DNA from: Macrostomum lignano
Lineage: Eukaryota
NCBI GenBank assembly: GCA_002269645.1
Contig: NIVC01002190.1
Location: 1 to 64,000 of the forward strand
Length of the DNA: 64,000 bases
Reading direction: 5' to 3'
Shown one piece after another: positions 53,326 to 53,926 of this stretch (positions are counted from its first letter, which is position 1; each line of letters opens with the position of its first letter). The notes under the pieces were generated by a model. It was not told the origin of the DNA and searched no databases. It saw only the letters and a program-made list of their open reading frames with translations. The position numbers and the translations under genes were made by a program.

Positions 53326-53375
53326 AGAAGGATTCGCTGCCATCTCCAGTTGGCAGGCTAAGCCAAGCGGTTACT

Positions 53376-53448
53376 TCGTTAGTGATCTATTCGGTAATGA
53401 TGTTCTGCTTTTAACGGAAACAAGTTGGTTCGATCCCAACCTAACGCC
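53376..53448 (+). tRNA. tRNA-like cloverleaf nested in vault-like RNA 1, anticodon TTT (Lys) at 53410-53412
   Basis: Acceptor CGTTAG/CTAACG (1:72 T-C mismatch), D stem with 1-nt bulge, anticodon stem TTCTG/CGGAA, loop CTTTTAA, T stem GTTGG/CCAAC, loop TTCGATC. Status as an independent tRNA is unproven. Confidence 0.5.
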
Positions 53449-53474
53449 CAAATCAACTGCTAGCGCAATCCTGC

Positions 53475-53480
53475 TTTTTT
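53475..53480 (+). terminator. Pol III oligo-T terminator (T6) of vault-like RNA 1
   Basis: T run directly after the 3' strand of the terminal stem. Confidence 0.65.
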
Positions 53481-53763
53481 CACTATTGAATATCTCTCTT
53501 CATCTTTCTGTTAATCCTAAAATGCTAAAATGCTAAAATGCTTTTCTGTTTCTAATTGAACATTTTGAAGAGTTGAACAACTCATCTCAGCACAAAAAAC
53601 TTTATTTGCTCTCTACTTTGGTCCTTGGGGAAAACTGCCACCTAGTTAGCTTATTTAAAAGGCGTTAGCTTATTCTCTTCTCTTCAGTAGTTAAGTGTCA
53701 GTAGCTAAAGTAGACCATCATTACAGTAATAAAATAACCTGCATTAAATGGTGCACCAGCCAC

Positions 53764-53770
53764 TATAAAT
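53764..53770 (+). promoter_or_regulatory. TATA box (TATAAAT) about 30 nt upstream of vault-like RNA 2
   Basis: Position -34 to -28 relative to GGCAGG at 53798. Confidence 0.6.
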
Positions 53771-53821
53771 GGTGAGCGGCTACAGCACCAGAAGCTGGGC
53801 AGGCTCAGCCAAGCGGCTACT

Positions 53822-53894
53822 TCGTTAGTTATCTAATTGGTAAGATGTTCTGCTGTCACCAGAAAGGTTGTTGGTTCGAGTCCAACCTAACGCT
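53822..53894 (+). tRNA. tRNA-like cloverleaf nested in vault-like RNA 2, anticodon GTC (Asp) at 53855-53857
   Basis: Exact 73-nt canonical geometry: U8, A14, G18G19, A21, U33, A37, T54T55C56G57A58. All D, anticodon and T stem pairs are Watson-Crick; only 1:72 is mismatched. Discriminator is T rather than the Asp G73. Confidence 0.55.
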
Positions 53895-53922
53895 CATTCT
53901 TGCTGCTGGCGCCATCCTGCCA

Positions 53923-53926
53923 TTTT
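53923..53926 (+). terminator. Pol III oligo-T terminator (T4) of vault-like RNA 2
   Basis: TTTT one base after the CCTGCC stem strand. Confidence 0.55.

Follow-up and report, generated by a model that had tools for sequence, protein, structure and literature searches.

Layout of the vtRNA locus

In the 64 kb of DNA analysed here (the window), two short genes, denoted vtRNA-1 and vtRNA-2, lie in tandem, flanked on one side by the 3' end of an INPP1-like gene and on the other by that of a convergent gene, their starts being separated by 446 bp (Table 1). The first 6 nt of both RNAs are GGCAGG. Directly 3' of the A box, both units contain (U/C)UACUUCG, where the conserved vault motif UUACUUCG is located, and the B boxes, which occupy positions +76 to +86, fit GGTTCGANNCC at 11/11 positions. 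The A and B boxes, the upstream TATA-like element and the terminal oligo-T run make up a Pol III gene architecture, the motifs of which are seen in both copies and in the allele on another contig, NIVC01001398.1 (see below); judging from the sequence, the TATA-like element TTTAAATA upstream of vtRNA-1 presumably plays a promoter role. An earlier, sequence-only reading of this DNA had described two tandem units with this spacing, each provided with a TATA-like element around -30, a GGCAGG start, an internal B box and an oligo-T end, and the analysis found the units and all these elements as described.

The homology between vtRNA-1 and vtRNA-2 comprises the transcribed region along with a short TATA-containing segment and stops at the terminator; the wider flanks of the two genes are unalignable. 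Within the window, exact occurrences of the 13-mer AGCGGYTACTTCG are confined to vtRNA-1 and vtRNA-2.

Table 1. Features of the two vtRNA units, with coordinates given as positions in the window
Feature	Positions	Strand	Remarks
TATA-like element of vtRNA-1	53319-53326	+	TTTAAATA; -33 to -26; present in the NIVC01001398.1 allele too
vtRNA-1 gene	53352-53480	+	RNA ~125 nt (53352 to ~53476); T6 terminator 53475-53480
A box of vtRNA-1	53360-53370	+	AAGCCAAGCGG; +9 to +19; aligned with the Vault consensus in its box A region
tRNA-like core of vtRNA-1	53376-53448	+	RF00005 42.6 bits, model positions 1-71 of 71; anticodon-loop triplet UUU
B box of vtRNA-1	53427-53437	+	GGTTCGATCCC; doubles as T arm of the cloverleaf
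Panhandle 3' strands of vtRNA-1	53455-53475	+	AACUGCU pairs with 53366-53372; CCUGCU pairs with 53352-53357
TATAAAT of vtRNA-2	53764-53770	+	-34 to -28; read from the sequence
vtRNA-2 gene	53798-53926	+	RNA ~125 nt (53798-53922); T4 terminator 53923-53926
A box of vtRNA-2	53806-53816	+	CAGCCAAGCGG; +9 to +19
tRNA-like core of vtRNA-2	53822-53894	+	RF00005 51.8 bits, E = 3.1e-8, model positions 1-71 of 71; anticodon-loop triplet GUC
B box of vtRNA-2	53873-53883	+	GGTTCGAGTCC; doubles as T arm of the cloverleaf
Panhandle 3' strands of vtRNA-2	53902-53921	+	GCUGCU pairs with 53812-53817; CCUGCC pairs with 53798-53803

Genomic context and the host genome

Positions 27250-58798 of the window are collinear with contig NIVC01001398.1 of the Macrostomum lignano assembly GCA_002269645.1 (32 kb, 93-99.7% identity, unique segments). 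This contig (locus L038) carries the same vtRNA pair, detected as RF00006 matches with nested RF00005 matches, with the counterpart of vtRNA-1 at 28177-28307 and that of vtRNA-2 at 28629-28758. Comparison of the two contigs reveals three changes in the body of vtRNA-1, one of which is a U to C substitution that turns the terminal G.U pair into G-C, and a single change in the body of vtRNA-2. The flanks hold most of the substitutions between the contigs along with two indels, of 16 and 21 bp; a 21-bp segment that includes the TATAAAT of vtRNA-2 is tandemly duplicated in NIVC01001398.1. From this comparison, the window represents another haplotype, homeologue or assembly of M. lignano, or a very close sibling species.

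The protein-coding content of the window was also compared to available sequences. The window is animal sequence, 34% of which consists of minisatellite or microsatellite arrays. Among 1.84 billion representative proteins, the best seven relatives of the product of an intronless DEG/ENaC open reading frame (ORF) are 28-34% identical to it, and all six of these that carry a name come from M. lignano. An INPP1 exon (46614-47075) matches two M. lignano proteins at 98% and 87% identity, the former being encoded on NIVC01001398.1. Records of the exact protein were found neither for the DEG/ENaC product, nor for the ORF that overlaps vtRNA-2, nor for the 87%-identical INPP1 paralogue (P0160). A word-indexed protein search returned nothing for the DEG/ENaC ORF and nothing for the last exon of the downstream gene, the latter query being probably swamped by low-complexity words. 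The host had previously been taken for a probable flatworm, in agreement with the best protein relatives, which are from M. lignano, and with the collinearity of the window with an M. lignano contig that bears the same gene pair.

Membership in the vault RNA family

The entire window was scanned with the 4227 Rfam families, and the E values given here refer to this search space. At the gathering thresholds, the scan produced four matches, all of them in the vtRNA region, and a permissive scan of the whole window added neither Vault nor tRNA copies nor any other credible match. The Vault model (RF00006, gathering score 34) matched both units along its full length (model positions 1-99 of 99), with 47.2 bits for vtRNA-1 (53351-53480, E = 2.1e-7) and 55.4 bits for vtRNA-2 (53797-53926, E = 1e-9). 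The assignment of both units to vault RNAs in the sequence-only reading thus holds in a covariance model search.

The bulk of the Vault score comes from the 5' and 3' arms of the RNAs, outside the tRNA-like core described below, including two motifs. One of these, AGCGGUUACUUCG, is a run of 13 consecutive nucleotides in the 5' arm that is identical in human vtRNA1-1; the other, GCGCNAUCCUGC, is a conserved vault motif located at the 3' end of both RNAs. The 5' end of vtRNA-1 is identical to that of human vtRNA1-1 at 23/28 positions; this figure, first given in the sequence-only reading, stands against the human sequence printed in PMC10087102. A spurious Vault match caused by the A and B boxes alone was considered as well and was rejected given that the 5' and 3' arms carry much of the score.

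The two ends of each RNA form a panhandle that consists of two stems, both of which are recovered in the minimum-free-energy fold of either copy. The terminal stem of 6 bp (GGCAGG/CCUGCU in copy 1, GGCAGG/CCUGCC in copy 2) pairs in every cell of the alignment, with one G-C/G.U change. The second stem, of 6-7 bp (AGCGGUU/AACUGCU in copy 1, AGCGGC/GCUGCU in copy 2), contains one compensatory change between the copies, from U-A to C-G (columns 20/107). Pairing of the termini and covariation in the inner stem had both been proposed from inspection of the letters; the former is borne out in both copies, and the latter amounts to one true compensatory change. We conclude that the two units are, in all likelihood, genes of the vault RNA family that belong to M. 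lignano or a very close relative.

An alternative that has to be weighed at this point is an origin of the units as copies of a tRNA-derived SINE, or as tRNA pseudogenes, with a match to the Vault model that is due only to the shared Pol III boxes. Such an origin would be in keeping with the match to the tRNA model in each unit (see below) and with the extremely repeat-rich surroundings, which abound in tandem repeats. It is nevertheless very improbable: the Vault score derives largely from the arms, including the motif that is exactly preserved in human vtRNA1-1, there are just two copies in 64 kb, and these occupy a syntenic position in NIVC01001398.1. Furthermore, the RNA bodies are more conserved than their flanks, and the copies are homologous up to the terminator but not past it. 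Neither unit is accompanied by an A-rich, poly(A) or simple-repeat tail or by target-site duplications (flanking direct repeats), and no extra copies are present in the window. Membership in a tRNA-derived SINE family was accordingly rejected for the 64 kb analysed, where two syntenic copies without tails or flanking direct repeats were found.

A tRNA-like cloverleaf in the centre of each RNA

Nested inside each Vault match, a central core of 73 nt also matches the tRNA model (RF00005) from end to end, with scores above the gathering score of 29 (Table 1), and ARAGORN calls these cores as tRNA-Lys(ttt) in vtRNA-1 and tRNA-Asp(gtc) in vtRNA-2. The core consists of a 6-bp acceptor-like stem, a D stem of 3-4 bp, an anticodon stem of 5 bp that closes a 7-nt loop, a variable loop of 4-5 nt and a T stem of 5 bp that closes the loop UUCGANN. 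When read in tRNA numbering, both cores keep U8, A14, G18G19, A21, G26, U33, a purine at position 37, the G53-C61 pair, U54, U55, C56 and A58. These nucleotides constitute the whole set that builds the elbow of the L-shaped tRNA. In the sequence-only reading, the centre of each RNA was described as a B box; the B box is indeed present, but that description is incomplete in that, by both RF00005 and ARAGORN, the whole region is a tRNA-like cloverleaf.

For vtRNA-2, the minimum-free-energy fold is the terminal stem, the second stem and the cloverleaf (-40.0 kcal/mol, and -39.9 kcal/mol with the cloverleaf enforced). For vtRNA-1, the D stem of which contains a U.U mismatch, the cloverleaf lies ~7 kcal/mol above the predicted optimum (-25.8 vs -33.2 kcal/mol), which we count as a weakness. 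Real tRNAs often fail to fold as a cloverleaf in minimum-free-energy predictions.

The cloverleaf does not resemble a decoding tRNA in several respects. Position 1-72 is a U.C mismatch in both cores, and the discriminator bases are C and U. The two cores do not show a defined decoding identity, given the near-identical bodies that carry the different triplets UUU and GUC, the 1-72 mismatch and these discriminators. Because the triplets differ, position 1-72 is unpaired and the discriminators are C and U, the core was filed as tRNA-like rather than as a tRNA.

The same features bear on the possibility that the units are functional genes for tRNA-Lys(UUU) and tRNA-Asp(GUC) with unusually long, base-paired leaders and trailers, as could be surmised from the ARAGORN and RF00005 calls and from the 7-nt anticodon loops with U33 and A37. 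We regard this possibility as scarcely credible. The acceptor, T and D stem sequences of the two cores are identical, the anticodon stems differ once (U.G vs U-A) and the remaining differences are in loops only, which is the drift signature of a non-decoding loop. The U.C mismatch at 1-72 also speaks against it, as do the AU-rich stems and the discriminators, C and U in place of the expected bases. The discriminator base is A73 in tRNA-Lys and G73 in tRNA-Asp, and RF00005 scores of 42-52 bits look low for a cytosolic tRNA in general experience with this model.

The core is not simply delimited from the vault framework. The 5' strand of the acceptor-like stem starts within the conserved vault motif UUACUUCG and, therefore, the core is integrated into this framework and is not a clean insertion. 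The outer shell of the RNA is itself in tRNA register, with a 7-nt, acceptor-like GGCAGGC strand followed by U8 and a box A at +9 on the 5' side, and UCCUGCC, A and the T-run on the 3' side; this register could be a trace of tRNA ancestry of the shell.

In the literature searched, the coverage of which excludes most subscription journals and which is, accordingly, weak evidence on this point, no description of a vault RNA with a tRNA-like or cloverleaf core was found. The presence of a complete, apparently selected tRNA-like core in a vault RNA appears to be unreported.

Substitution pattern and selection on the fold

The pattern of substitutions was analysed in an alignment of the two paralogues and their NIVC01001398.1 alleles, which effectively amounts to two independent sequences. 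Under the proposed structure, 98.5% of the alignment cells pair, compared to 26-46% after a shift of the 3' partners by 1-3 columns. Differences between the copies are concentrated in unpaired columns, both in the core (1/38 paired vs 14/36 unpaired columns; Fisher p = 9e-5) and in the RNA as a whole (5/64 paired vs 21/62 unpaired columns; p = 3e-4). A hand alignment of the two cores places 12 of the 14 core substitutions at the 21 canonically free tRNA positions (9, 15, 17, 34, 36, 38, the variable loop, 59, 60 and 73; P ~1e-6); the other two substitutions are U.G to U-A and U.U to U-A.

Overall, two pairs change on both sides, namely the above-mentioned pair in the second panhandle stem and the tertiary Levitt pair 15-48, which is U15/A48 in one copy and A15/U48 in the other (columns 39/73). 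Two-sided covariation was not observed in the helices of the cloverleaf, where 18/19 counted pairs are invariant, and we treat this as neutral evidence. The blocks of identity could in part be a product of gene conversion between the tandem copies.

These comparisons indicate that selection has maintained the cloverleaf fold, with drift of the 'anticodon' (UUU vs GUC). Since the fold is kept and the 'anticodon' is not, the core is best described as a structural tRNA mimic, not as a decoding tRNA. Constraint on the B box alone is insufficient to account for the pattern because it extends to stems (acceptor-like, D and anticodon) that do not serve as promoter elements.

Selection on the entire cloverleaf, beyond the B box, also fits a scenario in which RNase P and RNase Z cut at the borders of the core, so that the functional product is a 73-nt tRNA-like RNA. 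In that case, the vault-like ends would represent leader (24 nt) and trailer (28 nt) sequence and not part of a stable vtRNA, on the model of MALAT1 mascRNA and the MHV68 tRNA-miRNA transcripts. The cloverleaf is complete, with G18G19, U54-U55-C56 and A58, its 6-bp acceptor-like stem is stacked on the 5-bp T stem, and single-stranded internal-loop segments of ~5 and 8-9 nt border this acceptor-like stem in the predicted fold, so the cleavage sites are possibly accessible. Against this stands the conservation of the arms, which carry vault motifs shared from human to flatworm, match the core in their conservation between the copies and contain a compensatory change; none of this would be expected of a disposable leader and trailer. 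The U.C mismatch at 1-72, common to both copies, is a further argument against cleavage at these borders. On balance, processing of this kind appears unlikely, and we favour the interpretation of the full-length transcripts as vault RNAs with a tRNA-like core.

Putative mechanism and functional implications

If the units are vault RNA genes with a tRNA-like core, the following course of events can be envisaged. As judged from the motifs, Pol III would transcribe each gene from the TATA-like element at -30, the A box and the B box and would stop at the T-run. The resulting RNA of ~125 nt is predicted, from the covariance models and the substitution pattern, to fold as a panhandle that presents a tRNA-shaped central domain. 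By virtue of family membership, the full-length RNA would be a component of the vault particle, as in other animals. The cloverleaf would supply the TFIIIC-binding B box at the DNA level, and at the RNA level it may, by analogy, provide a handle for factors that recognise tRNA, such as La and the tRNA-modifying enzymes. NSUN2, a tRNA m5C methyltransferase, also methylates human vtRNA1-1. The activity of this enzyme on vtRNA1-1 has been attributed to a tRNA-like fold (bioRxiv 10.64898/2026.03.16.712100). Our confidence in these functional steps is lower than that in the identity of the genes.

In a broader and distinctly tentative reading, the vault RNA of macrostomids would be a 'tRNA within a vault RNA', that is, either a living intermediate in the descent of vault RNAs from tRNA genes or a modular fusion with a selected tRNA mimic, and in the fusion variant, which shares this modest standing, the mimic might be either presented from the vault particle or released by RNase P/Z. 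Should this reading prove correct, vault RNAs would be functionally tied to the tRNA machinery, including modification enzymes, La, RNase P/Z and possibly translation factors. An explicit, selected tRNA-like fold in a vtRNA offers a clean test of the handling of vtRNAs by this machinery, and both RNAi and transgenesis are available in M. lignano. On the practical side, these loci present an annotation hazard, given that tRNA finders will call them as genes for tRNA-Lys and tRNA-Asp.

Phyletic distribution of vault RNAs

The view of vault RNAs as essentially confined to deuterostomes, on which the sequence-only reading relied, is contradicted by published reports. Vault RNA homologues in two lophotrochozoan lineages are already cited in PMC2770079 (2009). 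According to PMC8824774, Rfam includes vault RNAs from M. lignano as well as from Lottia gigantea and Helobdella robusta, those of the latter two having served as queries in that work, and five putative vault RNAs were reported for Fasciola hepatica (Fontenla et al. 2022, PMC8824774, Table S9). A vault RNA has also been described in Trypanosoma brucei, as cited in PMC9283944. The M. lignano Vault entries in Rfam are very probably these same genes. With M. lignano Vault RNAs already in Rfam and cited in 2022, the existence of the present vtRNA genes is not new; as vault RNA genes they are ordinary and do not extend the known distribution of the family.

A metagenome collection was searched for vtRNA relatives with the pattern AGCGGNTACTTCG..GGTTCGA..TTTT, and 0/37 of the loci that contained this pattern were vtRNA-like. 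By appearance, they were coding sequence of bacteria, the surroundings of bacterial tRNAs or matches that had arisen by chance.

Comparison with known vault RNAs and tRNA-like RNAs

The Macrostomum genes resemble the human vtRNA1-1, 1-2 and 1-3 genes, which are likewise transcribed by Pol III, combine internal A and B boxes with a TATA-like element upstream, are arranged in small tandem clusters and encode RNAs in which the 5' and 3' ends form a panhandle. In the human RNAs, as in Macrostomum, box A is followed by UUACUUCG, and the 3' motif GCGC..UCC.GC is followed by a U-run. The differences concern length, which is 88-99 nt in the human vtRNAs compared to ~125 nt in Macrostomum, and the centre of the molecule, where the human RNAs have a variable central domain whereas a complete 73-nt cloverleaf takes its place in Macrostomum. 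The conserved UUCG is part of the acceptor-like stem in Macrostomum but pairs with CGAG of the B box in the Rfam/human model. At the position of the core, the Rfam Vault consensus has a 31-nt variable loop only, and ARAGORN found no tRNA-like core in human vtRNA1-1, 1-2 and 1-3.

The vtRNAs of Fasciola hepatica resemble those of Macrostomum in the presence of GGUUACUUCG after box A, a 3' GCAAUCC motif, the panhandle fold and the organization of the genes in clusters; the sequence GGCAAUCCCGA in the Fasciola RNAs is related to GCGCNAUCCUGC in the Macrostomum 3' arm. Unlike the Macrostomum RNAs, they are 107-113 nt long, have a degenerate B box (GTTC) and are devoid of the tRNA-like core, none being found by ARAGORN in the five Fasciola vtRNAs. 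Because the vtRNAs compared, three from human and five from Fasciola, do not have the cloverleaf, the most likely scenario, as far as this sequence comparison goes, is that the cloverleaf was acquired or elaborated in the macrostomid lineage and does not represent the ancestral state of vtRNAs. The core might have a broader distribution, for instance in Lottia, Helobdella or basal deuterostomes, in which case it would be older than this scenario implies.

Beyond the vault RNA family, the closest parallels are non-decoding cloverleaves that are kept for their shape, namely MALAT1 mascRNA and the TMER units of MHV68, the viral one also carrying the Pol III promoter. PMC9283944 describes a further case in trypanosomes, the SRP tRNA-like sRNA-76, in which a tRNA-like module occurs alongside another RNP. 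The Macrostomum RNAs differ from mascRNA and the TMERs in the placement of the module: in the latter, the cloverleaf is terminal and is cut off by RNase P/RNase Z, whereas in Macrostomum it is nested in a closed panhandle.

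Vault RNA cores and tRNA annotation

The tRNA-like cloverleaf cores (73 nt each) of the two vault RNA genes, vtRNA-1 (53352-53480) and vtRNA-2 (53798-53926), are called by standard tRNA finders as genes for tRNA-Lys(UUU) (53376-53448) and tRNA-Asp(GUC) (53822-53894), respectively. These calls represent an annotation hazard and would inflate the tRNA counts of Macrostomum genome annotations.

Sequence and genes around the vault RNA pair

The TATA box of vtRNA-2 lies within a 21-bp segment, CCAGCCACTATAAATGGTGAG, which is present as a single copy in the window (53756-53776) and is duplicated in tandem (28578-28619) in the collinear M. 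lignano contig NIVC01001398.1, which carries the same vault RNA pair, so that two TATA boxes are found there. The spacer between vtRNA-1 and vtRNA-2 also includes an 18-nt stretch (53707-53724) that is 89% complementary to the part of the vtRNA-1 core (53394-53411) where the 3' side of the D arm runs into the 5' strand of the anticodon stem; this stretch could have been left behind by an inverted partial copy, or the complementarity could be due to chance.

The pair has the INPP1 gene on one side and a convergent gene on the other, and the order SAXO1/2 followed by INPP1 is the same in the window and in NIVC01001398.1 (see the table for the coordinates of these and other features). The nearest relatives of the DEG/ENaC open reading frame are M. 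lignano paralogues that share just 28-34% identity with it; no called gene is on record for this frame, and it may therefore be an unannotated, rapidly evolving member of the family.

Features of the window surrounding the vault RNA genes
Feature	Position	Strand	Remarks
WD40-like exon fragments	1885-6640	+	putative, by reading translations; e.g. 1885-2256 and 3193-4113
DEG/ENaC (PF00858) ORF	16753-18510	+	584 aa, without introns
SAXO1/2 (PF05217) gene	26001-28704	+	exons
(CAGA)175 tetranucleotide array	30097-30796
(TAGA)126 tetranucleotide array	33011-33513
INPP1 (inositol polyphosphate 1-phosphatase, PF00459) gene	36718-47075	+	exons
(TGTC)114 tetranucleotide array	38260-38717
(CTAT)107 tetranucleotide array	39809-40238
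~45-nt repeat containing TTTGCCGATATGTATCGAAAA	53931-54102		three copies, directly downstream of vtRNA-2
Convergent gene beyond the vault RNA pair	54709-55569	-	last exon; low-complexity product
Telomere-like interstitial array	58967-59313		GGGCTA/GGGTTA hexamers, ~58 copies, 78% match
18-mer array	59791-64000		4.2 kb, occupying the window end

Tandem repeats

Tandem repeats account for approximately 34% of the window (1-64000). These include dozens of minisatellite arrays with 17-40-bp units, many of them intronic, as well as the four very long tetranucleotide arrays listed in the table. The putative WD40-like exon fragments alternate with minisatellite arrays, and array copy number differs between the window and NIVC01001398.1.
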